Shown here piece by piece: positions 3,659 to 31,500 of a DNA stretch of 64,000 nucleotides (positions are counted from its first letter, which is position 1; the number at the start of each line of letters is the position of its first letter). The DNA comes from Asterias rubens (taxonomy: Eukaryota), in the NCBI RefSeq assembly GCF_902459465.1, contig NC_047064.1:22568001-22632000 (forward strand), in the 5' to 3' direction. The notes beneath the pieces are model-generated. The model was not told the origin of the DNA. It was given only the letters and a program-made list of their open reading frames with translations, and did no database searches. The translations under genes and the position numbers were made by a program.

Positions 3659-6600
3659 TTAGTTATCTGGTTCGTATTGCCGTAGTCGGGATCTTAGGTC
3701 TTTCAGCTGATCGTTCTTCTTTGACAGCATGGACTTAAGATTCTTGTAGGCGCCGGTCTGGCTGAACTTCTTCTCTAATTCCTGAAAATAGAATCAAAAT
3801 AGTCACAAGATAATATTAAATTGGAAGTTTTTAAAGTGGTGAAGCATACTTGCTTAAATCCCTCCCACGTTATAATAACATTTGCCGCTCAATTTGACCA
3901 ACCATTCCAACTGCCCGGGTTGTGTTTGGTGAAGCGACTGTACACAAAACTATGTGCATGCTGTGTAGATGAATTCACAACATGATACGGTATTGCACGA
4001 TTGAAAAGTTTATCATTAAAAACCACAGTGGATGATTTCTAATTGTCAGACAGTCATGACAGTAGGAGGGTTGACTGTGTACTATGTATGTTCATTCTCC
4101 ACTTGAAATGATATTGCAAGCATGCACAGTTAATAAATTGTGTAAAGACCGCACCTGGACATCAATGAATGGTCCGGCAATATGAATAAGGTTACAGAAA
4201 ATTGGATTAAACTTTGTTGTTCATTTGCAACCTTGAGCAAGGGTCTCTGCAAAAGATATTTTTTATCAAATGGCTCGTTCAGAAAGAGATGTAACCAAAA
4301 TTAAAGCCTTGCTCTGGGAGAGTAATGGCTTTACCCTTTGTAACAGGGCCCCATTTCATACAGCTACTTTTATAAGCAGTTCATTTTGTGCTTGGCAAAA
4401 ATCAGCAGGATACCAGTCAGACATAGTGCATGGCACATGGTGTTTTGGCTGGTATCCTTATTCTGGTTAGCATAGTTTTTTTGGCTTAGCAACTTTATGT
4501 GCTTGAGCAGCTCTATGAAATTGCGCCCTGGTAACAATTTAACAAAACTTTATTATTTTGTGGGAGTGGATCGTTTCTTGCCTTTTCTGTCATCTCCAAT
4601 TGAGCCTTCATCTCCAAGAGTTTGTGTTTAGTTTGCGTCAAATCTCCTTCTAGACCGTCCGCTTTCTGTGAACTCAACTTGAGATTCTGTAAGAAGGGAT
4701 AAAACATTTAACACAAAAAGGCACTTCTATTTTATGCTAGGATTGTCATAATAGCAGAAAGCTGGCAACTTTTCAGTAAACCGATTCTTTTTTTAGAACA
4801 GATAATTGGAATATTATGTTTAATAATGATTATCATCAGAAACTGGGTTTGGACATCTAGGGAGAATGATAGACATCCTTTTTTGGCAGAAATGTCTTAT
4901 CTGATATACAGTATTTTTTAATCCCCTACATTTTTTGCATAGTAGGCCGCCAAACCTGTGTTATTTGTGGATTCGTGACAAAGAAGACAAGCTGTAGTGT
5001 TCTATTCTGGCAAGTGTGTTGACATTTGCTTCTTTCAAAGGTCTGGCTCATACAGTTCTAATTGGAATCTATAGAAATGGTTTTGCGCTCCAAAGGAAAG
5101 GACTCTTTCTGTTGTTGCAGCTTAATTGTGGAACAAGCTGCTGTGTTCTATCTACTGCAACCTTCAAGTGCCAACTCAAAACCTCACCTATTTAACAGCT
5201 TAGGATAAGTTTGTTTTGACGCATTTTCTTCATTTCTTTGTATTGAGTTCTGTTGTTGACAATAATATTTATTCGGACTATGAGGCGCTGTGTTCTTAGC
5301 AGAGTGCCATATAAATGCCTTGTATTGTTTTCATTAGAAACAGTTGAACAGTTAACCAGAAGTCACAAATTCAATTTAACCCTTTTGGAAAATAACTGTA
5401 GATGCACAGCCCTTATCACTATTCTCATTTTAGTTTGATCCATTCCCACTAAGGGTGAACCCAAATGAATAATCATATCCCCGGTGAAGATTCATTAAAT
5501 CATTAGCAGAACCTGCTGCTAATGTACAGGATTAGACCCTAGATCATCCTACAACTCTCTATAACAGCAGATGTCTTGGGTTCAAATCCCGCCCGAGTAG
5601 CAACTCTCCCTTTTCCTAAGATATTGCTGAGGCTGTTTTTACCTTCTCCATTTCTGATTTGACGGTGGACATCTGATGTTCCAGATCGCTGAGACCACTA
5701 GTGTTCTTCATTGGCTGCCTTGATTTCATATTACCCAATTCATCCTGAGTGTTGTGTAGATCAGCTTGTAGACGAGAACGATCTGCCAAGGCTGCTGTTG
5801 CCTACACACACAACAAAGGAATATGTATGTTTCTACATGTTATAAAGGAATATGTATGTTTCTACATGTTATAAAGGAATATGTATGTTTCTACATGTTA
5901 TAAAGGAATATGTATGTTTCTACATGTTATAAAGGAATATGTATGTTTATACATGTTATAAAGGAATATGTATGTTTCTACATGTTATAAAGGAATATGT
6001 ATGTTTATACATGTTATAAAGGAATATGTATGTTTATACATGTTATAAAGGAATATGTATGTTTCTACATGTTATAAAGGAATATGTATGTTTCTACATG
6101 TTATAAAGGAATATGTATGTTTCTACATGTTATAAAGGAATATGTATGTTTATACATGTTATAAAGGAATATGTATGTTTCTACATGTTATAAAGGAATA
6201 TGTATGTTTATACATGTTATAAAGGAATATGTATGTTTATACATGTTATAAAGGAATATGTATGTTTATTCATGTTATAAAGGAATATGTATGTTTATAC
6301 ATGTTATAAAGGAATATGTATGTTTCTACATGTTATAAATCTTTGTTTATACATGTTATAAAGGAATATGTATGTTTATACATGTTATAAATCTTTGTTT
6401 ATACATGTTATAAAGGAATATGTATGTTTATACATGTTATAAATCTTTCGAAAGCACTTTATCACTGGCAGCTTACCAAAACATTTAATATTTTGATTGA
6501 TGGGAAAGAGTTTTTTTTTTTTTTTTTTTATTGCTACAAACAAACGATGACAGTGAAACTCAGACACCCATCACTATTGAAACGTTTTCTCATTGAAATT

Positions 6601-9600
6601 TGCAGATTTTTTAAAAGCTCGTCTGTTTTGACATTTGTGTTTCTGAACCCAAATCAGACTTTTGGAAAGCCGTTATTGTAATGGCCAATCATCAAACCAT
6701 GATCAAATAAGCTTGAACAGCTAGACAACAACTTGAAAGAAAAATGCAGTATAATCCGCTTAACAAAATATTGACAAATAACAGATCTTCGAGCAAGGCA
6801 TTAAACACAACCGTTCCAATGGTTCATTGTTTCCAAGTCCTTTGTTTAAAAGATTAAATCAGAAACGAAAAGAAAAAATAGGCCTAGAAAAGATATTCTA
6901 TCAAGTAATCACACAAAACTAATATTTTACTAACGAGACATCTGCACTAGCAATTGCAAAGGTTATGGGTTCAAATCCCACTCGAGCTTGTGGGTCTTTT
7001 TCTTTGGACTCGGAAAGCACTGAGTGTAGAATGAATAAAAAACAAATCCGTTGTAAGGGCAAAACAAATTTTTATTTAAACAAGTCTCTTAAACACTACT
7101 CTGTCATTTTGCAAGCAAAGTTAATATAAATAGGGTCCTGTATTTTTCCACATCCAGGACATGCAAGAATTAGTTACATTCCCATCATGCACAACTGTTA
7201 TTTCCCAATTTTATACATCCACTCATTTCAAAAACATTCCAAGGTCAGGTCACGCACTGAACAGATTCTACTAAAGTCTTTACAAAACTCACAGTTCTGA
7301 CGTATTTTTGTTAGTCTGACTATTATGAGGTCTACTCATTGTTTAGTGACCTTTAACCTTGATACACGATGGTTGGAATTGGAGAAGCCTATACACAATC
7401 ACATATCGGTAGACTACCTCCATGGTATTATAGACATGATGGAGTAGAATCTAATGACCTTTGTGTATTAAGATTACCGGTACTCCAAGTATTTATAACT
7501 ACTAAGAACACTCAATAATTGTATTTGTAATTCTGAACTTCAAAGCATGTGTGAGCTGAACATGCTCAACAACAATATCCGTGTTAAAACATGAGCTTTA
7601 CGCGCACGCCCAGTGCGGGCTATGTGACGTCACTTAACAACCAAAATAAACTTGTGCAAGTCCTAACATCAATAATGTACTTTACAACCTTTTATCATGT
7701 ACTGACAACAAGACGTGGCTGCCATGGTTGTGCTTGTAGCACAAAGGCGCTCCATAAGTACAACAAACATATTGTTTATACAGGCGTGCCATACACAGGT
7801 CACATGGTCGATGGTCCTGTGGAAAGTTCTGGAATGAAGCAGGAGTAGTATATAATAATAGGCCTAGTTCGTTGTTCCGCATTCTGATAACACAGTGAAC
7901 CGGAAATACATAACAGCTGTTTCACTATGGTGTAAACTGTAATGTTCTTGACCTGAAATTGTTGTCTGTTTAAACTCTTTGGAAGATTTCTACCTCGGCG
8001 ATCTGAAGGACTCCAGTTATTGCTGGATGAGGTAAGTGCTCTAATACTATTAATAGCAGTGTTAATTGGTAATATTTGTTTTATATCATAGAGAAATGAC
8101 TTGCTCTATGGTTATAATTATGTCAAAAATATGCAAAGATCAGTCGGCATGTAGTTGTACATTTGCACTGCTCATTGGGGTCTACAGGGTACGTGAAACA
8201 AGCATTACTTCATGGTAATACCATGGAGCTACATGTAGATGGTACTCACATGGCGCGCGCCTAGTTTCGATCAGCTGAGGTTTCAAAATCAAGGCATAAC
8301 CACACAACTTGTGCAACTTAAAAGGGTGTTTTTCTTCCATTATTCTCTCGCAACTTCGGCCACCAATTAAGTTCAAGTTTTCACAGGTTTGTTATTTTAT
8401 GTGGAGTCATGGAGGTGTACAATGTATGTACACCAAGTGAGAAGGCTGGTCTTTGACAAAGACAAGGTGTCCAGTGCCTTGAAAGACCTTCTTTAATGAA
8501 AAACAGCAACAAGTGATATTCGCTCAAGTTTGTTGATAGAAAGTTTTCAATCAATAAGAAAACTGAGTTCACATGAGATTAAACAGATTTTAATTGTAAA
8601 CAAAGCAATCATTTTGAATACCCTTCCCATTGATCATAAATGCTGGCTAAAAATAGTCTGTTTGTCATTATTTTTGGGAGGGGCAACCAATTAAGTTAGC
8701 AGGGTGGCCAATTCTTAAACCTTGGGAGGGGTGGCTTGCCCTCCAACATTACATGTGTGGAGAACACTGCCTTCTCCAACGCTTTACTGAAAGATTCTCA
8801 ACGGCCTGTATGCCAGATTTGTAATAAATGATCAAGATTGTCCATACAACATGATGATGTTATCATGACGTCACTTCAAATTGAAGCAGATATTGTCCTT
8901 GACTTACAATAGACCAAGTTTCACCTCAATCAAACTTTTGGTTTGGCAGACAACAGCTTTGAAAAGTGCACCTTTAAAGCAAACCATGTGACACATGATG
9001 ACGTCATCAAGCTAAGAATCTACAGATATGTTGCTATTATGCTGAAATTATGTATACCAATTTTGAAACAATTATCATAAACTCTGACACAAGACATCCT
9101 AGTAAATGGGAATTTATAGATATTTTTAATCTGCCGCTAGAGGGCGCACTTATATTTGTTGACGTCATCAGCATTTTTGTTGTTAAACCAGATCTTTGCC
9201 AGACTTGTATTACATGATGGTAAAGTATCAAAAGGTGTACATTTCAACCTAAAATTATGCTTTTTCAAAGCACTTTACAATCACTTCCTGTTTAAACAGA
9301 TCAAAAGGTTTTCCATTTTTGTGAAGTACATAAAGCCCTTTCATGAGGTATAGATTGTCAAAACAGCTTATGTGGTTGAGGATATATTGAACTTATATGA
9401 AGAGATGACAAGAGGAAGCGAAGTATGAAGAAAAAGAGATAAAATAAAATAAAAAATAAGGTGTTCTGGGCTGTTGGCCCGAACGCCTACATGTAATAAA
9501 GAATTGTAATGAGCACATATCCACCCTGCTATTGATAATTATCATTGATAATAAATAAAAATTCATAAATACCTCAGACAGTTTTGCTATTCCGATTGGT

Positions 9601-12600
9601 GGAGGTGCATCACGTGGGGGTGTAAAAATCTTTGATGACCAGTGCTAATAACCAGCTGGCTTCCGCGTGTCGGGCGCGCAAGATTATCACGCGGAACGCA
9701 ATTCATAGCTAATATAGTAACAGAGCGTAATCTAAGTACGCGCGCGTACACACAACCTAGCACATCAAACAGATTCTTCGCAAAATGTTTGAAAAAAATA
9801 TTTCAAACCTCGACATGCTCGACTTTTCAATTGTTAAAGTGTCTATAATTGTATTTTGTTAACGTTTTTGAACAAAAGGGCATTGATGAATGGGAATAAA
9901 AGAGTAGTGATTCGTTTTTAAACGTCCGTTTAAAACCTTGCAGGGTCGTTGCCATGCGATAAAGGCCCTCGCCTTCGGCTTGGGCCTTTATCACATGGCC
10001 GCCGACCCTGCCGGCTTTAAACGCATGTTAAAGAACTCGTCACTACCCTTTTATTCCCTTATTCAAGTATACAATTACCAACATTACGTATGATGAACAT
10101 TACAAACAAGTTTAAATAGCAATCCTTAATTTTCAAACAAAAAATTGCTCAAAATCAACATAAATTATTTACATGGACTTAGGCCCAGAGCCATTGAGGC
10201 AAGTCATGTCATTGAGGCAAGTCAATGATGTGCAATGTTTATTTTGAGTCTGATAAATTTCTTTTATTTTTGTTGGCTATCAAAGTTCACTTACCTATAA
10301 CTTAAAATACAAATGAGATCAATCTTCTACTACAAGCACTATTTTCAAATAAAGCAGTTGAGCTCATTAGGTATGTTTCTTCTCCATTTGACTCTGGCAT
10401 TGTAAAAAAAAAATTGTAAAACTGTTGACCTAAAAGCCCTAAGCTAGATCAAGCATCCCCCAAAAAATATTTTTGGTCTAACATATTTGATATCTGCATT
10501 TGACAAAATTGAGATATTCCCTTAGCATTAAAAGTTACATGTAATACCATGCGTAGCCTTTTCTTTTTCCTTCCCAGATACTTGAAAGATTTAAAATATA
10601 TATATATATTTTTTTTTTCTACAGCAAAGGAGCAAACATTCCTAAGGATGGCCACTGGCAGCAAAGTGATGGAAAAGCTACCTAAGGGTCAAATGTCACA
10701 GCTCAAATGTCAAGCTTGTGATGAAGGGACACAGGCAATTGCAAAATGCATAAAGTGCGATCATTTTCTGTGTCAAGAATGTCAACGAGCCCATCAGCGT
10801 ATGGGCATCTTGAAATCTCACCAAATCCACACCTTGGGGTCTGATTACGAGGAGCAATCCCCCAAGACCTCAGACAAGATGTTCACCGACACCAAAAAGA
10901 AAATCTCCAAAAGTGCTAAAGCAGCTGCTGCAAGCGTCAAAGAGGAGGAGAGGAAACTAGCTGAAGAGGCAGAGCAACCTCATGAGGAAGCAAAGTGGAA
11001 ACTAAACAAATCTATAACGACCTTCCAGTTGATGGAAGAGAAAAAAACACTCCTCCATGCGTATGACGTCGCAGCCTTCTCCAACAACGATATCATCTTG
11101 GCAGATATTAAAAACAAAGTCTTGGTAGTAATCTCAGAAAGCAAGCCCCACCCGGAACAACTAGACATCAGAGGTCTCAAGAATCCTCAACGTATTGCAG
11201 TCAATAAAGATGACCAGTTAATTGTGATTGATCATCAAGAGGTAAAGATCTTCAACAGGCAATATGAATTACTTCGTCGGTTCGAACCAAAAAGGGGGAA
11301 GGTGTCATACAGCACGCTGACTTGTCTTGCAGTGGATGAAAATAATCATATAGCCGTTGGGTGCAGAAACAAGGCGAAGGGCCTGGAGGAGATATCTCTT
11401 TATGAACCAAATGGAGACTTAATAAGAAGGCTACTTGCTTCTGGGATAGGTAACTTTTTGATGATTCAAACACAGTTGTGCATCTACTGGAACGGTGACA
11501 AACTGCACACGATGGACTACAACGAAAAAACAGTGCGTTCAACGAATATCGGTCGATCCGGTAAAACCCCCTTTCACCCTACGGGTATGTGTTTTATTAA
11601 GGGTATCGGTTTGTACATTGCAACGCGACACTCTTCCCCTTCTGAACCAGGCGAGATTCATCAGCTTTATCCTGCTGATCAGCAAACAGAGTGTGTTATA
11701 CAAGACTGTCAACATCCACAAGGCATGACAGTCACGCCAGATGGTCAATTGGTTGTGGCGTGTGAAGATTCTCTCAAAATCTTTCACAGATGGCCGTCCA
11801 GTCTCAAGGATCTCTTTGTTCAGGAAGAAGTCCCAACAAATCAGGATCATGTTGACCCCAGGCCACAGGGAACTTTCCAGTGTTCATCCGACACTTCCAA
11901 CTGTGTCATTTGTAGTGTCCACATCAAACAATCAACCTTCTTCAAGAGCAACAAGAAAGATACCCAAATAGAGCATAAGACAATTGGTCATATCACCTGC
12001 ACCACCACTAATCTCGTCTATCTCATATCTTGCAAAAAATGTGGTTTACAATATGTAGGTCAAACAAAAAATACACTCAAGAAGCGTTTCTATAAACACA
12101 GATCCACAGTCAATGGCAAGAAGGACACAATAGGAGAACACTTCAGTCAGAGCGATCACTCTATTACTGACATGATTTTACAAGGCATTGAGGCACTAGG
12201 ATTAAGAGGAAACACTAGAAAGGTTCGCACGGAAGAGGAGACAAAGTGGAAAAAAAGGCTTAACACCATAACACCCTCTGGTCTGAACAAAAAGTTGAAG
12301 GACTAAAACATTGTCTTCACCTTCTCCTTTTAGTCTGCCTCGTTCATTATTTAACTACTTTTCTGTCCCTCTTCCCACCATTGATTTTGTTCTTTGTGTA
12401 TCCTATCTCCTGTGACCAAAAAAACCTCTTCCTAAGTAACAAAACTTTGCATCATGTGGATAAATAGGAAGAAACTAAAAAATAAATATTTATTAATACC
12501 GGGACAGTTTATCCAGTCTGATTGGTCCAGAGGCCATCACGTGGAGGCGTGTAAGACATCAGTAAGAAGGCGTGACAGAGGAGCTTATGTGTGGCGTTAT

Positions 12601-15600
12601 TTTATGCATAACACAATCAACATAAAACAAGAACTATGCGCACATACGCATAACCATTGAGCGCCAATGCCATTGTTGCGGTTTAAAAAAAAATTGATTT
12701 ATTTTACAGATTTCACTTATGAAATCTGTAAAACAAATCAATTGTTTTGCATAACTTTATTATGCTTTTTAACAAAAGGGCATTTATGAATGGGAATAAC
12801 AACGACGCCCTCATAAGCAATCAATAGTCGCGACTCCGACAGTAGTCACCCAGACTTAGACTGAACCTACCTGTGTCTCAACCATCTTGAGACGTTCCTT
12901 GAGTTTGTTATTCTCCTCATTGAGTCTTGCAATCTCAGCATGGAGAAGTTGCTCTCCTTCTCCAGCCATAGGGTCAAGACGCTTCATCTCAAAGGTCGGC
13001 TTGCTCGTCACCTTTAGAGAAAGTCAACAACAAAAGGGACTTTGATATTAAGCAGCTAAATTATATTCATAGTTTTAGTGTTTTGTGGTGTATTATGTAA
13101 ATGAATTTATTCCCATTTTATTTTACAACTTGCATGTAGTTAGTGTAAAATTTCAAACATTTTGGGAAACTAGAATATTAATTTCAAGTTTGACTGAGAA
13201 TACAATGTATGTGACAAATTGATATCAACCTTTGGTTTGTAATGAAATCACTGCAAAGTAAAAGTTCTTTTCAAGCCGTCACAGGAACAAACAATTGCTG
13301 GAACTTATTATGAATAGTTATTCTTTTCCTTTTTTGCATGTTTTTACATATCTCCTCTTTTATCTATTATAATACAAATGTAAAATATTTGATTCAAGTG
13401 TATCATGTGTATTGTCAGAATTGTGGCTTAAATTGTGGCATAAGTTTGGCTAAATTTTAGATGGCCTAGAGGTGTGATATGTGATGCTAAAGGGCATGCC
13501 GTAACCGCTGGTTCAGCAATTGGCCCTCAGTTGTTTTGTTTGGCAATTGTCACTAAGATGACAATGTAGTATTGCTTTAGTAGGAATAAACCATTTGCCA
13601 GTACATTTTTAGGTAAGACTATAGTGGACAGTTGCTATGTCAAATGGTTCGGGGCAAGCGTTTGTATAGCAACCTCCAGATGAGCAAACCCTGGTACCAA
13701 TGTGCCTTACACATCAATTTTGAATTGTGTAAAGGTGTTCACCGTCTCTTAGATAACTAGGCAAAAGCTTGCCCCAAATCATATGACATAGCAACTGTCT
13801 CAATAATCTGAGGAATTCAAATTTAAGTGGTAACTTGTGATCAAGCACATTATTGTTCAAGACAATATACTAAAATCCAACTTGCAAGTGGCTTATTGCT
13901 CAGAGCTTGTATTGTAAGAATTAAAGGAAAGGTTTACATTTGGTTAAATAACTATATTAAAATTATTGGCAACACAAACTTTTGATAAGAAGACTCCAGC
14001 AGCGTTTGATAGCAAAAAGCATTTTGAGAAATATCTCCTGCTTCGAAGTATATGTAATGTGGTTCTTTGAAAAAATAACAGTTTTTATGCCCAAATTTGT
14101 AATCTGAGCAGATAGACTGTGTATTCCAATCAGCGATTATACTTCCTGCATCAACATATTAAACGCTCAGGATTTGGTGATACTCAAAGATTTGACCACC
14201 TTTCGAAATAAAATTGTCAGATTTAGTTTGTTAGTGTATCTACATTTAATCAAACAGTTGGTTTAGGCTTTTAAACACTGCTGAACAACTATTTTGAATT
14301 AATTGCACTAGTGAAGTAAATAAGATATTGGTAAATATTCTCCGCTTGTATCTGTAATTGAACTTTTAATAAGGTGCCTAGTCATACTAACATGTACCTC
14401 AATCTTAAGACCTAATCATGGGAATTTTTGATGTATTGCTGAATCTTTGTAAACACATTTTAAAACAATAAATTAAAAGTGAAGCCTGAGATTTTATCTC
14501 TCAATTATTATTTAGTGTGAAGAGGACTAGGTTGGTTGTGACACAGGTCTGCCATTTTCATCTTTGAGAGGGCAAGGCCATTTCATCTTTGAGATGGCAA
14601 GGCTATTCATCTTTGAGATGGCAAGGCTATTTCATCTTTGAGAGGGCAAGTTCATTTCATCTTTGAGAGGGCAAGGCCATTTCATCTTAGAGAGGGCAAT
14701 GTCATAGGCCATGAGAGGGCAAGGCCATTTCATCTTTGAGAGGGCAAAGTCATTTCATTTTTGAGTGGACAAGGTCATTTCATCTTTGAGAGGGCAAGGT
14801 CATTTCATCTTTGAGAGGGCAAGGCCATTTCATCTTTGAGAGGGCAAGGCCATTTCATCTTTGAGAGGGCAAGGCCATTTCATCTTTGAGAGGGCAAGGC
14901 TATTTCATCTTTGAGATGGCAAGGCCATTTCATCTTTGAGATGGCAAGGCTATTTCATCTTTGAGAGGGCAAGGCCATTTCATCTTTGAGAGGGCAAGGC
15001 TATTTCATCTTTGAGAGGGCAAGGCCATTTCATCTTTGAGATGGCAAGGCTATTTCATCTTTGAGATGGCAAGGCCATTTCATCTTTGAGAGAGCAAGGC
15101 CATTTCATCTTTGAGAGGGCAAGGCCATTTCATCTTTGAGAGGGCAAGGTCATTTCATCTTTGAGTGGGCAAGGCCATTTCATCTTTGAGAGGGCAAGGT
15201 CATTTCATCTTTGAGTGGGTAAGGCCATTTCATCTTTGAGAGGGCAAGGCCATTTCATCTTAGAGAGGGCAATGCCATAGGCCATGAGAGGACAAGGCCA
15301 TTTCATCTTTGAGAGGGCAAGGTCATTTCATCTTTGAGTGGGCAAGGTCATTTCATCTTTGAGAGGGCAAGGTCATTTCATCTTTGAGTGGGCAAGGCCA
15401 TTTCATCTTTGAGAGGGCAAGGCCATTTCATCTATGAGAGGGCAAGGCTATTTCATCTTTGAGATGGCAAGGCCATTTCATCTTTGAGATGGCAAGGCTA
15501 TTTCATCTTTGAGAGGGCAAGGCCATTTCATCTTTGAGAGGGCAAGGCTATTTCATCTTTGAGAGGGCAAGGCCATTTCATCTTTGAGATGGCAAGGCTA

Positions 15601-18600
15601 TTTCATCTTTGAGATGGCAAGGCCATTTCATCTTTGAGAGAGCAAGGCCATTTCATCTTTGCGAGGGCAAGGCCATTTCATCTTTGAGAGGGCAAGGTCA
15701 TTTCATCTTTGAGTGGGCAAGGTCATTTCATCTTTGAGAGGGCAAGGTCATTTCATCTTTGAGTGGGCAAGGCCATTTCATCTTTGAGAGGGCAAGGTCA
15801 TTTCATCTTTGAGTGGGCAAGGCCATTTCATCTTTGAGAGGGCAAGGCCATTTCATCTTAGAGAGGGCAATGCCATAGGCCATGAGAGGGCAAGGCCATT
15901 TCATCTTTGAGAGGGCAAGGTCATTTCATCTTTGAGTGGGCAAGCTCATTTCATCTTTGAGAGGGCAAGGTCATTTCATCTTTGAGTGGGCAAGGCCATT
16001 TCATCTTTTAGAGGGCAAGGCCATTTCATCTTTGAGTGGGCAAGGTCATTTCATCTTTGAGTGGGCAAGGTCAATTCATCTTTGAGAGGGCAAGGTCATT
16101 TCATCTTTGAGAGGGCAAGGCCATTTCTTCTTTGAGAGGGCAAGGCAATTTCTTCTTCGAGAGAACAAAGGGCACACATGATACACATGTCCAGTTGGAA
16201 ATCTTCAATTACTTCATGTACGTGGGAAGCTTTTGAAGGAGCACCAAGGCCAAGACAACAGACACCATAGCTTCTGTGTCTTTCCAAGCCTGCATTGTGA
16301 ACTTTCAATCAGTAAAATAAAAATGACACTTACTGACTTTCCGGAAAACTGACTCTCTTCAAAGTCTGCAATCATTTCTATCAGTTCCCTGGGGGGAAAA
16401 AAAGACACAGTTAAGATGTTAAACCTCCACATCCTGTTGTCACTAAAGTAGAGTGACTTGTTTCTGCATCTGCTGATTGACTGTACTCAACGTTCTGTTG
16501 GACTATCACTATACATGTTCAATATAAAGGTGTTGTATTTATTAGGGGGAATGTTCAAAACAACATGCTGACTTGTCTTGCAAGTGATGAAAATAATCTT
16601 AAAGCTGTGGGGTACAGGAATACGACGCAGGGCCTGGCGGAGATATCTCTTTATGAACCAAATGAATCCTTAATATGATTCCCTGGCAGGAACATTTAGA
16701 GAATTACCGATTTTCCAGTTCAGATATATCAGCCATGAGCTTGAGATGCCATTTCTCTGCCTGTTGGAACAGCTGACGAAGTAATAAGACATTGGTGTGG
16801 GCTGTGTTAATAAGTTCAGACTCCACTTCACCTCGGACTACAGCCTCAAGACCATCAAGCATCTCAACCACTTCATCAGCAGTAAAAGTGTCTTCGGTCA
16901 ACCTGAGAGATTAAATAATAACATTGATTGAATGACTTTAGAACCATTTCACTTCATTTATTAACTCTGGCTGTGAAGCCAGGGACTCTAAGAAAGATGA
17001 ATTTAATCAAACTTAGTACTAGCCATAAAAACAATTGAGACAAAACAACGAAAACAATTTTGATTTTAATGTGGGATGAAAACTTCACAGAAATATTTCA
17101 GGGAAAACTACACAATCAGGTTAGGACATAAAACTCACCTTGTGCCCCCGGCAGGAATCAAACCGAGAGACTAAAAAGTAAGAAAATACATAACTACATC
17201 AACCCGACCACCCAACTTAGTATAGAGCGCCCTCAGGTCAAGCATTCAATGTTTGAGCACAAACACAATACTGCCGGACTTGTCCAGGCATGAGTTTATA
17301 GGCCTAATACTAAAATCACTACCCTTGGCCTTCAGTCCAGTGTTAAATTCAAGCATTGGTTTAATGTTTAACCCTGTATGAACCCCTCAGAATCACTGAA
17401 ACTAACAACCAAATTGATTCTGATTAAGCTTAATAATGATAATAATAATGGATATTTATATAGCGCCCATCCATGTACATACTGGCATGCTCCTGGGCAC
17501 TGAACAATTAAAAAAAATTTTTTATAATCCATACAGTTAAAGGTAGTGGACACTTGGTAATTGCTCAAAATAGTTATTAGCATAAAACCTTACTTGGTAA
17601 CAAGTAATGGGGAGAGGTTGATAGTATAAAACATTCCTCTGAAGTAACGTAGTTTTCGAGAAAGAAGTAATTTTCCACGAATTTTATTTCAAGACCTCAA
17701 GTTTAGAATTTGAGGTCTCGAAATCAAGCATCTGAATGCACACAACTTCGTGTGACAAGGGTGTTTTTTCTTTCATAGTTATCTCGCAACTCCAATGACC
17801 AATCGAGCTCAAATTTTCACAGGTTTGTTATTTTATGCATATGTTGAGATACACCAAGTGAGAAGACTTGTCTTTGACAACTACCGATAGTGTCCACTGA
17901 CTTTAAAAATGTAATAAATGCAGTATTTGTACACAACAATCCATCAAGCTAAGCATAATTTCACGTCTCTGCTAACTGTAAGCAAAAAATAGGCGCCTTT
18001 CAGTAGGGTATTCCGCACTCAAGCATATTTCTAAAGTTGGCAGGGAATTTTACTTGTGCTCATGCATACTTCACCTTACTAGGCATTATTCGCTTACAAA
18101 GCTTGAGCAGAAATTCGGCCCTTGTCCTACAAGCAAAGAATGGTGATCACAAGCGCAGAATTTGGCGGTAAGCAGAGCTATGAAATTGGACCCAGCTGAT
18201 CACTGCTACTCCTGTAAATTCCACATAACAGCCGAGTTACCTGCTGTCTTTGAGATCCTGAAAGCAACCTTCAACACCACGTAGATTCTGGTTGCGTTTG
18301 TAGCGATTGAACCTCATGTAGTTCACCAGCGATTCCTGATGGTGGTCACTCACTCCCAAAGCACTCGCCTAAAAAATAGGAAAAATTATGTTAATATTGA
18401 TCTTTTGATTAAAAAGCAGCTTGAAGTGATAACCCAACAACCACTGGACTGGATAAATGTGCTAGCGCTCTACCAATCGAGCTATCTAGCCCTATTTTGG
18501 CAGTCTCTTTGTTTTGTCAATATCTTTGTTGATGTGCCAGTCAGAAACATTACCAGTCGTGTAGCCAAGAACCAAACCCAAGTTTACGATACAACCTTGG

Positions 18601-20454
18601 AAGGGTAGCCAGGGGACCACCTTAAGGGTACAGTGACCTTATCAGTCAAAATATTAAGTAATAAACCACAAAGGAAGCTGACTGTGTAAATTTTGTACTA
18701 ATTTGGGGTTGAAGAAGGTGTTTTTGTTGTCTTCTTTTGTCTTTGCCTAGTACCTACATGTATTGTAACACTACAGTACTACAGTGCATCATACTGATAC
18801 AGTGATGATTGATCATGGTTTTGTGGCTTGCTGGAGCCCCACAATCACAGACACACCATCTAGCCCCACTTGTGTGGCCAAGGCAAGCTGAATCCTTAGT
18901 TACACGTCCATACCATTTCCTTATGCAGCTAAGAAATAACAATAAATTTCAAATTCTGGCGCCTCCCCTCAAGCCACCCGGCAGTATAAACTGGCTGAAT
19001 GTGTTCAACTATCTCTTAGCTTGCTTTGTCTGTATTGAATAGTGAAACAAATAAAATTTTAACAAGAAATTTTTAACGATAACTTTGCTACCTTACTCCG
19101 ACTCTAATTTCCTCGATTTGTACACGGCGCAGCCATCTTGGAATATGCCAATCAGCATGACATCATCGGCCTGCCTAGCTGAGGGCCCATGAGCTGTGGG
19201 CGGAGTGTGTGGAGTGCGAATACAAATCAACGGCTATCTTATGTGAATTAAGCTTGGGTGTTTTTCGTGAACTACAGAGCGCGTGCGCGTAAAAAGTACC
19301 AAGCTTAATTCACATAGAATAGCCGTTGATTTGTATTCGCACCCTCACAGGCCCACAGCTCGGCAGGCCGATGATGTCATGTTGATTGGCATATTCCAAG
19401 ATGGCTGTGCCATGTACAAATCGAGGAATTTAGAGTCGGAGAAAGGTAGCAAAGTTATCGTTAATTAAAAATTTCTTTTTAACATTTTATTTGTTTGACT
19501 ATTCAATACACACAAAGCAAGCTAAGAGCTAGGTGAACACATTCAGCCGGTTTATACTGCCGATTGGCTCGTAGGGTAGGGGAGGCGCTGCATAACTGGA
19601 AATGGTATGGACATGTGTGGCTACGGATTCAGCTAGCCTTGGCCACACAAGTGGGGCAAACACACCATCGTACAGTTCCACCAGCTTATTTTATACATTT
19701 CGCAAGTTTGTACAAAAACTAAAGTTGACAATGTTAGACACTGTTAAAGTTAAACAATTTGATTGAGCCCTGTGCTGTGGTTAAACTGAAGTGAAATGTT
19801 GAGTTTGTGTTGGGTTGGGTTGAAAAATGGATGGAGATATCGTCCATCCATGGAAAAATTGAGTGCCGTACGCGTACGACCACACACATGACCCACACGA
19901 CTGCAATGAAAATTTAAAAAACAACTTCTTGATGCTTATTCGTAGGTTTATTTAAGTATATTGTTAACTTACTCACCATCATATATTAGCCTCTGTCGTG
20001 TACTCTGTTTGTCTAGTCTGTCTTGTGTTTTCTTTCTTCTGTATAGTATTTTATGTTGTTTGTCTGTCCATAGGTAAGGCACGTCAAAAGCCTCTGCTTC
20101 ACCCTACTAACCTAATTGTTGTCCTACTTTAAAAGCTTCCTGATATATAACTATCTAAATCATTGTAAACTTTCATATCCTAAGATACTAAGTAATACTG
20201 TAAACTACTCATAATTTGAATATATTTATAAAACTTTGTAAAATGTGTAAGTTTAAACATGGAGCATAGTTTATTATTGCTCCATGAGAGTCCATGGTTT
20301 AAATGTAGGGCAGCAAATGTGTGCAAATACAACAAAAAAAAGAGATATTCTTAATAATCCTTCTTCCACAATTTTTCAGAACAAATAATATATAATAGTA
20401 CAGAAACATAATAAACACAAATTGTGATAGTAAAACAAGTTGTCAAGTTACCAT
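3659..20454 (-). CDS. LZTFL1: Leucine zipper transcription factor-like 1 (BBS17), 8 coding exons, 302 aa
   Basis: Exons (- strand): 20454-20452 (ATG only), 18368-18241, 16902-16708, 16388-16334, 13011-12871, 5801-5643, 4686-4582, 3781-3659 (TAA). Total 909 nt, phases consistent. Translation MASALGVSDHHQESLVNYMRFNRYKRNQNLRGVEGCFQDLKDSRLTEDTFTADEVVEMLDGLEAVVRGEVESELINTAHTNVLLLRQLFQQAEKWHLKLMADISELENRELIEMIADFE...ELEKKFSQTGAYKNLKSMLSKKNDQLKDLRSRLRQYEPDN matches LZTFL1 as I recall it (ESELINTAYTNVLLLRQLF, ELEKKFQQTAAY). All introns GT-AG except the last (GC-AG). Confidence 0.95.
5815..6443. repeat. 29-bp minisatellite, ~21-22 copies
   Basis: Unit aaaggaatatgtatgttt(c/a)tacatgttat, period 29 (5821, 5850...). 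Confidence 0.95.
7600..8037 (+). promoter_or_regulatory. Candidate promoter and non-coding first exon of the nested B-box/NHL/GIY-YIG gene
   Basis: Palindromic CRE GTGACGTCAC 7624-7633, ETS-like ACCGGAAAT 7899-7907, strong donor GAG|GTAAGT (intron would start at 8032). Pairing with the acceptor at 10624 is inference. Confidence 0.4.
9549..10065. mobile_element. Non-autonomous repeat ending in a ~180-bp hairpin with a GCCTTCGGC-type loop; truncated same-family copy at 12478-12800
   Basis: 9887-10065 is an imperfect palindrome (tgaatgggaataaaagagtagtga...tcactacccttttattcccttattca). Shared blocks with 12478-12800: gacagttt...gattgg...catcacgtgg and aacaaaagggcatt(g/t)atgaatgggaataa. Confidence 0.65.
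10648..12306 (+). CDS. Intronless RING-less TRIM-NHL-like protein (B-box, short coiled coil, NHL propeller) fused to a Penelope-type GIY-YIG endonuclease, 552 aa, nested antisense in LZTFL1 intron 5
   Basis: Part of the 585-aa ORF 10549-12306. Likely start MATGSK at 10648, downstream of an acceptor (tttttctacag, AG 10623-10624). B-box CQAC-x9-CIKC-x4-CQEC-x3-H-x8-H (10708-10821). NHL-like blades (AYDVAAFSNNDIILAD, NPQRIAVNKDDQLIVID, CLAVDENNHIAVG, HPQGMTVTPDGQLVVAC) ~11035-11790. C-terminal TC-x3-NLVYLISCKKCGLQYVGQT-x5-RFYKH...GEHF...RTEEETKWKKRL-x-TITPSGLN (11788-12303). AATAAA at 12481. Confidence 0.9.
   Translation: MATGSKVMEKLPKGQMSQLKCQACDEGTQAIAKCIKCDHFLCQECQRAHQRMGILKSHQIHTLGSDYEEQSPKTSDKMFTDTKKKISKSAKAAAASVKEEERKLAEEAEQPHEEAKWKLNKSITTFQLMEEKKTLLHAYDVAAFSNNDIILADIKNKVLVVISESKPHPEQLDIRGLKNPQRIAVNKDDQLIVIDHQEVKIFNRQYELLRRFEPKRGKVSYSTLTCLAVDENNHIAVGCRNKAKGLEEISLYEPNGDLIRRLLASGIGNFLMIQTQLCIYWNGDKLHTMDYNEKTVRSTNIGRSGKTPFHPTGMCFIKGIGLYIATRHSSPSEPGEIHQLYPADQQTECVIQDCQHPQGMTVTPDGQLVVACEDSLKIFHRWPSSLKDLFVQEEVPTNQDHVDPRPQGTFQCSSDTSNCVICSVHIKQSTFFKSNKKDTQIEHKTIGHITCTTTNLVYLISCKKCGLQYVGQTKNTLKKRFYKHRSTVNGKKDTIGEHFSQSDHSITDMILQGIEALGLRGNTRKVRTEEETKWKKRLNTITPSGLNKKLKD
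14551..16152. repeat. 25-bp minisatellite, ~60+ copies, with higher-order structure
   Basis: Unit catttcatctttgagagggcaaggc, period 25. A variant (cttagagagggcaatg(c/t)cataggccatgagagg) recurs near 14700, 15275 and 15875. Confidence 0.95.
16543..16674 (+). pseudogene. Decayed fragment homologous to the NHL-coding region (11293-11423) of the nested gene, in LZTFL1 intron 3
   Basis: agggggaatgttcaaaacaacatgctgacttgtcttgcaagtgatgaaaataatc...gggcctggcggagatatctctttatgaaccaaatg aligns with agggggaaggtgtcatacagcacgctgacttgtcttgcagtggatgaaaataatc...gggcctggaggagatatctctttatgaaccaaatg. Confidence 0.85.
17541..17902. mobile_element. ~370-bp TTAA-flanked MITE (Kolobok-like), family A
   Basis: TTAA|AGGTAGTGGACAC...GTGTCCACTGACT|TTAA. 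Confidence 0.85.
18861..19659. mobile_element. Fold-back (palindromic) non-autonomous DNA element, 799 bp, with 10-bp TSD (Mutator-like), in LZTFL1 intron 1
   Basis: Arms tagccccacttgtgtggccaagg... and ...ccttggccacacaagtggggcaa are inverted over ~350 bp with a short central spacer. Flanked by direct repeat ACACACCATC (18851-18860, 19660-19669). Confidence 0.85.
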
Positions 20455-28500: not shown

Positions 28501-31500
28501 CTATTATACCTTTTTATACAAAACAATTTGTACAACTTTTTGGCACTTAAATTAGTTTTAAGTCCTTAAATATTTGAATGTACTACCTGCGTGAATATAT
28601 ACTTGCACTTTGTAGTGTTTACTGAACTTAATGTACATGAATGTACTACCTGCGTGAATATATACTTGCACTTTGTAGTGTTTACTGAACTTAACGTACA
28701 TACATGTATCTTGTTTTCTTGTACGGTGCCATAAGCATTATTTCTGGTTGAAATGTGTGTTTTATTTTGGAACAATTCCCTTCATATGTTTCATTTTATT
28801 GTTGTGTGTTGTGCATGGCGAAACAGCCCAACTTGAAAAAATTATACAAAGAAAAGAAACAAATAAAGATTAGCAGTTAATAAAAAACAAAAACAGGATG
28901 AAGGTGCAAAAAGGAGCCGAGATATAACATGTTATACTCACATCCATGCATAGTTTGCCTTTGAAATTTGGATGTGGAGAAAGTGCCATAAATTTACCCA
29001 GAAATGAATTTAAAATGAAAAAAACTAACATTTTGAATAGACTGTTTGGCCATGGTAGGCCAAGTGGCTTGCGCTATATAAATATCTTGTACGACTTAGA
29101 CTAATTATATAGTCAATGAGACTAATGGACCGATCCGGCCTATCAATCAAACTGCGCGTTCACCCATTTGACCAATCACAGCAATGATTGTGGTCGGACA
29201 AACTCGGTCACGCGTGCGCGTATATTTGGCATGCAAGTGTCTTGCTCACGTGCGCGGTGGGCGGAGCTTAGTGGAAAGCCGGAACGATCCATTATAGGCT
29301 TGAAATAGAGCGCTTTGTCCAGTGGTGCGTAGACAACTTTCTCACTTTGAATATAACCAAAACCAAAGAACTTGTTTTTGATTTTCTTAAGATCCGTCAA
29401 GGTATTCATCTGGTTTGTATAAAGAATGACGAAGTAGAAATTGTCAGTGAACATGTGAATATAAATATCTTGGAACAATTATAGATAACAAACTGGATTG
29501 GAACAAAAATACTCAAAAATCGTGTGCCAAGGCAAATCAGAGGATTTATTTTCTAAGGAAATTACGGTCTTTCAATGTCTGTAATTCAATTTTACACCTG
29601 TCTTACCAGAGTATTATTCAGTCAGTCATTACTTTCAGCTGTAGTGTTTGGTATAATAATCTAACTATGAAAAATCATAAGAAAATTGATCGTACCACCA
29701 AGGTTGCCAGCAAGATAAAAGGTTTCGAAGTAAAACCCATGAGAGAAATCCTAGACAAACAGTATGTAAATAAATTGAAAGTTATAACCCAGGACCCAAC
29801 TCATCCACTACACTCATTCATTCACATTCTCCCATCAGGAAGGTACCGTTCTCTCTCTACTCGCACAAACCGGTTCAGACTATCTTTTTACCCAGTGCTA
29901 TTCATCTTTTTAACTCACATTTTTCGTAAGGTAACTTAGTAGTTGTTTTTCCATTTTAATCAGTGATGGTGAGTTTTTGATAATGTTTTTCTCTCTTTTT
30001 AAAAATTTTGAACTAGCCTATTTATTGCTTGTACTAAAGTTTTGTAATTAATTCTGTGTTTTTGTAATCAATTCCTTGCCCTTTCAAAGATGAAATTGCA
30101 ATCCGGCATCATTATTGTGTTGTTATTAAGTTAGTCGATTTCATGAGAGTAACTAAAAATATAAATATGAATAGTAAACTTGCGGGTACAATGAGTTTCA
30201 AGAGTTGATTCATCTTTGACATTTCAGGGGGTGATAGAAATGGCGGATATAGTGGCGGAGGAGGATACATAAGAAGCGAACAAGACGGAGAAATGGAATC
30301 GGGTAAGAAGCTTGTAGAGTTTAGTTGAGAGAGAGTGAGCCAACATCTTATAAATATGAGCATAAATGTAATAAATGGTTGCGTTTAGTAGTGTGTCATG
30401 AATGAGCAGCCCATTGAATGAATTTAACTTCATGAGGTTGTTTAGTAGTGTGTCATGAATGAGCAGCCCATTGAATGAATTTAACTTCATGAGGTTGTTT
30501 AGTAGTGTGTCATGAATGAGCAGCCCATTGAATGAATTTAACTTCATGAGGTTGTTTAGTAGTGTGTCATGAATGAGCAGCCCATTGAATGAATTTAACT
30601 TCATGAGGTTGTTTAGTAGTGTGTCATGAATGAGCAGCCCATTGAATGAATTTAACTTCATGAGGTTGTTTAGTAGTGTGTCATGAATGAGCAGCCCATT
30701 GAATGAATTTAACTTCATGAGGTTGTTTAGTAGTGTGTCATGAATGAGCAGCCCATTGAATGAATTTAACTTCATGAGGTTGTTTAGTAGTGTGTCATGA
30801 ATGAGCAGCCCATTGAATGAATTTAACTTCATGAGGTTGTTTAGTAGTGTGTCATGAATGAGCAGCCCATTGAATGAATTTAACTTCATGAGGTCGGATC
30901 GATGCAGTACTCTTAAGCTCTTTTCACTCTACCTACTTTTGATCTGTGTAATTGGCGTGTGGGGATCCAAGTAAAAAGTTTTCTACACAGATTAGATTCA
31001 TTTCACCCAAGAGAAAAATTAACCCAGTTTCATACTAACACCAAGATCGACAGCGGGTTAACAGTTTCATACTAACACCAAGATCGACAGCGGGTTAACA
31101 GTTTCATACTAACACCAAGATCGACAGTGGGTTAACAGTTTCATACTAACACCAAGATCGACAGTGGGTTAACAGTTTCATACTAACACCAAGATCGACA
31201 GTGGGTTAACAGTTTCATACTAACACCAAGATCGACAGTGGGTTAACAGTTTCATACTAACACCAAGATCGACAGTGGGTTAACAGTTTCATACTAACAC
31301 CAAGATCGACAGTGGGTTAACAGTTTCATACTAACACCAAGATCGACAGTGGGTTAACAGTTTCATACTAACACCAAGATCGACAGTGGGTTAACAGTTT
31401 CATACTAACACCAAGATCGACAGTGGGTTAACAGTTTCATACTAACACCAAGATCGACAGTGGGTTAACAGTTTCATACTAACACCAAGATCGACAGTGG

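Follow-up and report, generated by a model that had tools for sequence, protein, structure and literature searches.

What kind of gene occupies positions 10648 to 12306 on the forward strand of the Asterias rubens DNA analyzed here (assembly GCA_902459465.3, record LR699094.1), in which one open reading frame (ORF) appears to join a host protein to part of a retroelement? A first-pass annotation of this 64-kb stretch, called the window below, had read the locus as a chimera of a TRIM-NHL-like protein with the GIY-YIG endonuclease (EN) of a Penelope-like element (PLE). Our analysis revealed that the gene unites two known kinds of component, with a TRIM-like NHL protein on one side and a domesticated retroelement domain on the other. 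We consider it very probable that the fusion gene has a PLE origin and has been maintained by selection, and the best explanation overall, which we favor with less assurance, is that it is a selected sensor-nuclease gene produced by PLE capture.

The longest form of the ORF in the ORF listing of the window spans 10549..12306 on the forward strand (585 aa), and a second in-frame ATG at 10648 leaves 552 codons plus a TAA, ending at 12306. We preferred 10648 as the start because the Asterias amurensis orthologue starts at the identical Met, in agreement with the uninterrupted 552-codon ORF that had first been annotated. The 33 codons 5' of 10648 cross a T-rich tract and a CAG resembling a splice acceptor; the coding exon could begin at this site, which may imply an intron in the 5' untranslated region (UTR). 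The coding part of the gene is intronless. Its features are as follows.

10609..10624, forward strand: T-run followed by CAG, splice-acceptor-like, 23 nt 5' of the ATG (from reading the sequence; interspecies divergence rises from near here).
10648..12306, forward strand: complete ORF, 552 codons plus TAA, encoding a RING-less TRIM-NHL-like protein with a PLE endonuclease (ORF, Pfam, orthologue alignment).
10702..10827, forward strand: B-box1-type zinc finger, residues 19-60, C-x2-C-x10-C-x2-C-x4-C-x2-C-x3-H-x8-H (Pfam PF22586, KAP1 match, predicted local distance difference test [pLDDT] ~80).
10849..10854, forward strand: point at which A. rubens lacks 234 nt (78 codons) that A. amurensis has, an in-frame deletion that took out B-box2 and the beginning of the coiled coil.
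10861..10974, forward strand: one long helix, residues 72-109, a coiled-coil remnant (AlphaFold; aligns with the distal coiled coil of paralogues).
10996..11790, forward strand: six-bladed NHL beta-propeller, residues 117-381, ending '..KIFHR' (Pfam, PDB search, AlphaFold, Foldseek).
11791..11868, forward strand: PLE-derived disordered spacer, residues 382-407 (BLASTP against the PLE proteins P0225 and P0050; pLDDT <50).
11869..11997, forward strand: PLE linker with the Cys motif C412-x6-C419-x2-C422, residues 408-450 (EN alignments; motif defined in PMC8557442).
11998..12288, forward strand: GIY-YIG catalytic core, residues 451-547 (Y458, C462, C465, Y469, G471, R480, H484, H498, H504, E531, N547).

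Pfam returned all three expected domain types, namely an ANCHR-like B-box (PF22586, residues 21-60) at 27.0 bits, exactly the cut-off, NHL at 40.2 bits (cut-off 20), and GIY-YIG (PF01541, residues 456-494) at 27.5 bits (cut-off 22.6). In phmmer searches against PDB, B-box1 matched the B-box of KAP1 (E=8e-6) and the fusion protein matched the NHL domains of TRIM2/TRIM3. The full-length AlphaFold model, built from a 25-sequence alignment with a mean pLDDT of 78, comprises the B-box, the helix at 72-109, the propeller at 117-381 (pLDDT mostly >90), a disordered spacer at 387-409, and a compact C-terminal alpha/beta domain. Foldseek placed the propeller with the NHL domains of Brat, TRIM2/3, Thin, and Lin41, with template modeling (TM) scores of 0.73-0.77 on the target. 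The domain order first proposed (B-box1, coil, NHL propeller, GIY-YIG) was confirmed by Pfam, PDB searches, AlphaFold, and Foldseek taken together. The propeller ends at the position where paralogue ORFs stop, but it is internal in the fusion protein, where the EN comes after it.

The coiled coil, described at first as short, is indeed short in A. rubens, where a 38-residue predicted helix remains, but only because 78 codons covering B-box2 and the start of the coil are missing; A. amurensis retains both. No RING was found in the ORF by Pfam, and none was found encoded upstream in the window or in the A. amurensis locus, the sequence 5' of the ATG showing only a weak RING-B-box-spacer resemblance broken by stops.

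The EN module, modeled alone from 70 sequences, reached a pLDDT of 93.5. Its best PDB fold match was the catalytic domain of I-TevI (TM 0.80, root-mean-square deviation 2.1 Å), followed by UvrC, T4 endonuclease II (EndoII), and Hpy188I, whereas a profile search of the module against PDB sequences gave a marginal T4 EndoII match only. PLE endonucleases are recognized by two Cys residues lying directly between the motifs GIY and YIG (CCHH) (Arkhipova 2006; PMC8557442). The window protein carries the PLE EN motif at T450-G471: Y458 and Y469 enclose C462 and C465, and H484, H498, and H504 follow downstream, so the CCHH signature reported in the first-pass annotation is present. The catalytic set Y458, Y469, G471, R480, H484, E531, and N547 occurs in both A. 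rubens and A. amurensis, and both retain the nine zinc ligands. A zinc-finger-like CX2-5CxxC linker is found in Neptune, Naiad, and Terminon ENs and is lacking in Penelope/Poseidon (PMC8557442). The linker Cys columns are 96-99% Cys across 150+ PLE ENs; the Cys spacing is x6 in A. rubens, one residue over the published range, and x5 in A. amurensis. The presence of this linker therefore points to a Neptune-like rather than a Penelope/Poseidon-like element as the probable source of the captured module.

To place the origin of the fusion, we compared it with proteins of PLEs that link reverse transcriptase (RT) and EN. An exhaustive HMMER search with the last 169 residues returned 5440 relatives, and the closest RT-linked relatives of the EN module were echinoderm PLE proteins. 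P0225 (934 aa) was 49% identical over 186 aa, with the spacer, Cys linker, and entire nuclease aligned, and P0050 was 36% identical over 168 aa, spacer and linker included; both are RT+EN proteins, in which the segment homologous to the spacer lies directly before the EN linker. RT-linked echinoderm ENs were 49-57% identical to the fusion EN, and EN trees nested the Asterias module in a clade of these sequences, with poor resolution within the clade.

The junction itself could be located precisely. Ordinary RING-B-box-NHL paralogues end in '..KIYHR' followed by V or L and a stop, 1-2 residues past the last propeller strand. At the junction the PLE protein reads '..AFRRPRNLRDLIVRAEVP..GTFKC' and the window protein '..KIFHRWPSSLKDLFVQEEVP..GTFQC'. 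About 170 PLE codons therefore replaced only the final 1-2 codons and the stop of the parental gene. The host-retroelement chimera originally proposed is supported in its PLE origin by the homology across spacer, linker, and EN, by the tree, and by this junction. The gene thus formed when the terminal ~170 codons of a PLE ORF, which encode the spacer, the Cys-rich linker, and the EN, became attached in frame at the very end of a RING-B-box-NHL gene with a single exon; the RING was lost after the fusion, and A. rubens lost B-box2 too. The earlier description of a nuclease acquired in place of the RING ligase is loose: the C-terminus gained the nuclease, loss of the RING was a separate event at the N-terminus, and a Patiria relative has both.

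None of the other PLE parts that were sought accompanies the module. In tblastn searches with five RT+EN PLE proteins, the only match in the 64-kb window was 11746-12294, and the A. amurensis locus matched in the EN only; the earlier statement that no RT is present and that the locus is no autonomous PLE agrees with this. No Rfam match to a hammerhead ribozyme was obtained in 8000-16000, where only chance-level matches to microRNAs and small nucleolar RNAs appeared, and no PLE terminal repeats were found at the fusion locus.

Comparison of the A. rubens locus (L002; coordinate + 647 = window coordinate) with that of A. amurensis (L001) revealed an orthologue (P0002) of 628 aa with the same layout, aligned end to end. 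It is a RefSeq-type predicted model annotated 'E3 ubiquitin-protein ligase TRIM71-like'. In both Asterias species the fusion gene lies antisense within an intron of a 302-aa Leu_zip gene, with colinear flanks.

3659..20454, reverse strand: host gene with a 302-aa Leu_zip (PF15294)/LZTFL1-type product, whose intron holds the antisense fusion gene (gene calls).

An orthologue at the LZTFL1 intron, as the first-pass annotation had anticipated, is thus present in A. amurensis with an intact and undisrupted frame. The junction is identical in the independent assemblies of A. rubens and A. amurensis, so that a mis-assembly at this point is contradicted. No close paralogue of the fusion gene was found in either annotated Asterias proteome. 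The fusion gene has been open at one chromosomal site since before the split of A. rubens and A. amurensis, and in these two congeneric species it is a single, syntenic host gene that has lost its transposable-element hallmarks.

These results bear on two alternatives. That the ORF is an assembly or annotation artefact is barely credible, given the same ORF and junction in the assemblies of two species and the single-exon junctions found at related loci in Patiria, amphioxus, and a second A. amurensis locus. The fusion might instead belong to a mobile element, for example a PLE derivative that is non-autonomous and has transduced a host gene; PLEs can mobilise host genes lying between their terminal repeats (PMC3846280), and the other fusions described below are non-syntenic. 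The shared site and colinear flanks in two species, together with the lack of an RT, hammerhead, terminal repeats, and a close paralogue, make this explanation very improbable.

Whether the frame has been kept by selection was evaluated from the A. rubens and A. amurensis sequences. Substitution divergence was ~3% in the flanking intron and 8.4% in the ORF. In a neutral simulation, 139 substitutions drawn from the flank mutation spectrum left the ORF free of stops with a chance of 0.002. About 11 indels were expected in the ORF at the flank rate; 4 were seen, all multiples of 3, and the chance of no frameshift under neutrality was 1e-4 to 6e-4. Neutral survival of the frame is therefore very unlikely.

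The ratio of nonsynonymous to synonymous divergence (dN/dS, omega), estimated by NG86, LWL85, YN00, and maximum likelihood, was 1.5-2.1 for the whole ORF. By region, it was ~0.6-1.6 in the N-terminus, 1.3-1.9 in the propeller, and 3.9-7.8 in the PLE-derived part, so the neutral value that the first-pass annotation had named as damaging to its reading was not observed in the GIY-YIG half, where the ratio exceeds 1. Synonymous changes made up 20/136 across the ORF versus 27% expected from the flank spectrum (P=4e-4), and 3.7/54 in the PLE part (P=2.5e-4). Two control TRIM pairs from the same species, treated in the same way, gave omega values of 0.57-0.91; omega is therefore not inflated by the method, and the fusion gene remains conspicuous even within a fast-evolving family. 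Best-match TRIM pairs between the two species were 84-90% identical with dN/dS of 0.6-0.9, from which it follows that the whole family evolves fast. The control RING-B-box-NHL paralogues of Asterias (L006, L007, L009) are single-exon genes too, and one of them, P0243, also lies antisense within an intron, in this case of a Malectin-domain gene.

The amino-acid divergence of the EN part between the two species is 22%. In an alignment of 150+ PLE ENs, 39 columns reach a conservation of at least 70%, and all 39 were kept in both species, with three conservative exchanges, while the 33 EN replacements fell in variable columns (Mann-Whitney P=0.001). Replacements were spread over both Asterias lineages. 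The pattern is one of a constrained catalytic core and a rapidly changing surface. A non-functional chimeric ORF that stayed open by chance would account for an overall dN/dS that is not below 1 and for the large in-frame deletion in A. rubens; it is nevertheless a highly improbable explanation, since the stop-free and frameshift-free outcomes are so rare under neutrality (P=0.002 and ≤6e-4), conserved EN columns were avoided, and the synonymous deficit is significant.

The same data argue against an ordinary regulatory TRIM-NHL-like protein, active in the germline or development as are Brat and LIN-41, in which the PLE tail is tolerated under weak family-wide constraint. The identity of control pairs (84-90%) and their omega of 0.6-0.9 would suit such a protein, as would the weak site-specific constraint on the propeller. 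A tolerated tail should approach an omega of ~1 and lose both catalysis and frame, whereas the observed omega is 3.9-7.8, the core is conserved, and the frame is intact; we regard this account as improbable.

Related fusions were sought among all 265 proteins fetched. The propeller and the PLE nuclease module are combined in five of them:

P0001, A. rubens, the window gene: B-box1, helix, NHL, linker, EN.
P0002, A. amurensis orthologue: B-box1, B-box2, coiled coil, NHL, linker, EN.
P0067, A. amurensis XP_071807548.1: one 557-codon ORF with a propeller and two tandem modules.
P0076, Patiria miniata XP_038062839.1: RING, coil, NHL, module.
P0117, Branchiostoma lanceolatum CAH1251664.1, named 'TRIM3': NHL and module.

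The P0067 gene lies at L004:6001-7674 (A. amurensis CP134971.1), ~22 kb from the record start, and encodes a divergent propeller followed by the tandem linker-GIY-YIG modules; the B. lanceolatum fusion locus is L005:6001-9586. At the Patiria, amphioxus, and second A. amurensis loci the junction falls inside one continuous exon, and the related fusions are therefore not gene-model artefacts. No RT adjoins them, and they sit at non-syntenic sites. An indexed homology search with the EN region alone gave 7 matches, and an indexed search with a five-member profile gave no further fusions, a result that says little about absence because it missed 3 of its own query members. In the EN tree, an approximately unbiased (AU) test of all five modules as one clade gave p=0.026, with long branches involved, while the propeller tree did not reject monophyly of the fusions (p=0.13-0.15). 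The statement in the first-pass annotation that no protein of this architecture had been described holds for the literature searched, in which no publication was found, but unremarked gene models with this architecture exist in A. amurensis, Patiria, and amphioxus.

The module also occurs behind other N-termini (P0081, P0079, P0164, P0139). In P. miniata (L010:4001-5846) it stands behind a MUL1-like GIDE domain, where a RING would be, with the junction within one exon; gene models place it behind leucine-rich repeats in B. floridae and behind dynamin-type GTPase regions in eel, caecilian, and frog. These arrangements suggest that the module may have been captured recurrently by unrelated host genes. 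A wider proposal, that invertebrate deuterostomes and possibly some vertebrates have repeatedly built sensor-nuclease genes from the PLE linker and GIY-YIG domain, the Asterias member being active and locked in an arms race, is offered tentatively and with considerable doubt.

Every module in the five propeller+EN proteins keeps its zinc ligands unchanged, but only the window gene and its A. amurensis orthologue still have the complete catalytic set. The Patiria protein P0076 has R to C and E to K changes; the first module of P0067 has Y to F, G to D, and R to Q, and its second has E to Q and N to Q; the amphioxus protein P0117 has R to K. Such changes suit an alternative in which the module is a zinc-dependent nucleic-acid-binding or PLE-mimicking domain, for example a decoy that blocks integration of the parental PLE or a DNA tether. 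The invariance of the nine zinc ligands in 5/5 proteins despite catalytic losses in P0076, P0067, and P0117 favors it, the tandem modules of P0067 suit a binding array better than catalysis, and the nearest relatives of the EN are echinoderm PLEs, which may still be active. Pure binding would require none of the catalytic residues, all of which are kept in the window gene and its orthologue despite 22% divergence, and we judge this alternative unlikely, although less so than the others considered here. From the conserved residues, we lean toward the window protein having retained nuclease activity.

The NHL propellers of TRIM-NHL proteins bind RNA or proteins. In the selected sensor-nuclease gene that we favor, the propeller would likewise bind a target, RNA or protein, the B-box and residual coiled coil would promote self-association, and the PLE endonuclease, whose RT-linked relatives nick or cut AT-rich DNA, would cleave nucleic acid in its vicinity. 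DNA cutting by PLE endonucleases favors AT-rich sequence, and mutants of the GIY-YIG Tyr and Gly lose cleavage (PMC11167929). The excess of replacements suggests genetic conflict and could reflect an arms race, in which the opponent might be a virus, a retroelement such as the PLE family that gave rise to the module, or another selfish element or inhibitor. A role in defence or conflict is on present evidence a possibility that we hold with less than even confidence.

Several observations weigh against a conflict-driven sensor-nuclease. Evolution is fastest in the effector rather than in the presumed sensor, an uncommon pattern among immune TRIMs, and propeller replacements were only weakly biased to variable columns (P=0.08). 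The selection comparisons rest on A. rubens versus A. amurensis and assign selection to neither sites nor branches. The loss of B-box2 and half of the coiled coil in A. rubens could be early decay. The catalytic losses in relatives that keep their zinc ligands imply that the property selected family-wide may be nucleic-acid binding. Divergence is also high beyond the coding region.

12307..12799, forward strand: probable 3' UTR and flank, with an AATAAA at 12481 conserved in A. amurensis (interspecies comparison; unusually high divergence, 7.5%).

These 493 non-coding nt after the stop are 7.5% diverged versus 3.1% upstream (P ~1e-6), and more than protein-level selection therefore raises divergence across the block. 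The diverged block spans ~10565-12800 (~2.2 kb) and ends at a ~770-bp indel in A. amurensis. Because the whole block is diverged, omega values referred to the distant flanks would be overstated; the within-ORF tests are unaffected. A locally raised mutation rate or balanced old allelic lineages are possible causes of the block.

Other candidate explanations of the divergence were examined. CpG or transition bias was not supported as the cause of the diverged block. Conversion from PLE copies was rejected as the main cause of the high EN divergence, since it should lift dS no less than dN and the reverse was seen; EN changes showed no bias toward the PLE consensus (5 vs 5). One-sided decay in A. 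rubens was not borne out by polarised changes (8 vs 11 and 5 vs 5).

We then compared the fusion protein with known systems. With TRIM-NHL proteins (TRIM subfamily C / class VII: TRIM2, TRIM3, TRIM71/LIN-41; the TRIM-like Brat and NHLRC1/Malin) it shares the B-box, a predicted coiled-coil helix, and the six-bladed propeller, and it is RING-less like Brat, whereas the Patiria relative is Malin-like in having RING and NHL without a B-box. It differs from TRIM-NHL proteins in lacking a RING and in carrying a C-terminal nuclease module, its nearest TRIM-NHL paralogues are only 35-45% identical, and it sits on a long branch. Since there is no RING, the database name 'E3 ubiquitin ligase TRIM71-like' is unjustified. 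With canonical PLEs that have a C-terminal EN and linker (Neptune-like; P0225, P0069, P0231), the window EN shares the GIY-YIG core, the CC pair, the His residues, the R/H/E/N residues, and the Cys linker, but it lacks the RT, pseudo-long terminal repeat (pLTR), and hammerhead ribozyme of those elements and is single-copy and syntenic. I-TevI-type homing endonucleases share the catalytic fold (TM 0.80), and a weak PADLOC match was to the C-terminus of UzuA, a bacterial defence GIY-YIG protein (E=2e-7); sequence identity to I-TevI-type and bacterial GIY-YIG proteins is only ~18%, which indicates a shared fold, not whole-protein ancestry.

Two further likenesses can be drawn. TRIMCyp denotes the TRIM5-cyclophilin A fusions of owl monkeys and macaques, in which the added module is a host gene retrocopy used for recognition. 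As in the window gene, a TRIM scaffold received a new C-terminal module through retroelement activity and shows conflict-type selection; the difference is that the module there serves recognition, whereas the one captured in Asterias is an enzyme of the retroelement itself that would act as the effector. SETMAR-type host-transposase fusions, which derive from DNA transposases, similarly place a nuclease-type domain of a mobile element in frame behind a host domain in a single-copy gene. Sensor and nuclease logic is common among defence systems.

Of the major retroelement classes, Penelope-like elements are the least understood, and TRIM-family proteins are central in animal innate immunity and RNA regulation. 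To our knowledge, known TRIM effectors are ubiquitin ligase or RNA-binding activities, not nucleases. If the sensor-nuclease reading is correct, a TRIM-NHL scaffold with an intact, fast-evolving nuclease would represent a new effector logic for the family, show retroelements being domesticated by a new route, and offer a compact system for studying how a retroelement nuclease is retargeted. On the more doubtful proposal of repeated capture, the Asterias protein would be the first PLE enzyme to be exapted and would parallel, in eukaryotes, the sensor-nuclease proteins of bacterial defence. The locus is small, its coding part is intronless, and it belongs to a laboratory-tractable echinoderm, so the hypothesis is directly testable. 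The database names 'E3 ubiquitin-protein ligase TRIM71-like' and 'TRIM3' are corrected by these results, as the proteins so named are RING-less or carry an unannotated nuclease.

A full-text literature search found no publication combining GIY-YIG, NHL, and B-box and no report of PLE endonuclease exaptation, and no class with a C-terminal nuclease domain was found in the published TRIM classifications consulted. A survey of Adineta vaga reported no exapted Penelope ORFs (Arkhipova et al. 2013).

Other features of the window were noted in passing. The intron that holds the fusion gene also contains a minisatellite at 14551-16163 (64.8 copies of a 25-bp unit, 90% matches), with a matching array in A. 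amurensis. At 16538-16675 on the forward strand lies a fragment resembling one NHL blade of TRIM-NHL paralogues (≤66% identity over 35 aa, E ~1e-5), conserved in A. amurensis at L001 17012-17116; it could be what is left of a further family member in this intron. About 600 bp 5' of the gene, at 9892-10058, is a nested palindrome with 46-nt outer arms that are 80% complementary and an inner 23-nt hairpin; it looks like a miniature inverted-repeat transposable element (MITE) and occurs once in the window. A run of N occupies 34601-34730. On the reverse strand, at 43988-44458 and 30227-30889, one ORF is a clear bZIP (PF07716, E=4e-16) and another matches DUF7274; both are probably exons of, or whole, unrelated genes.

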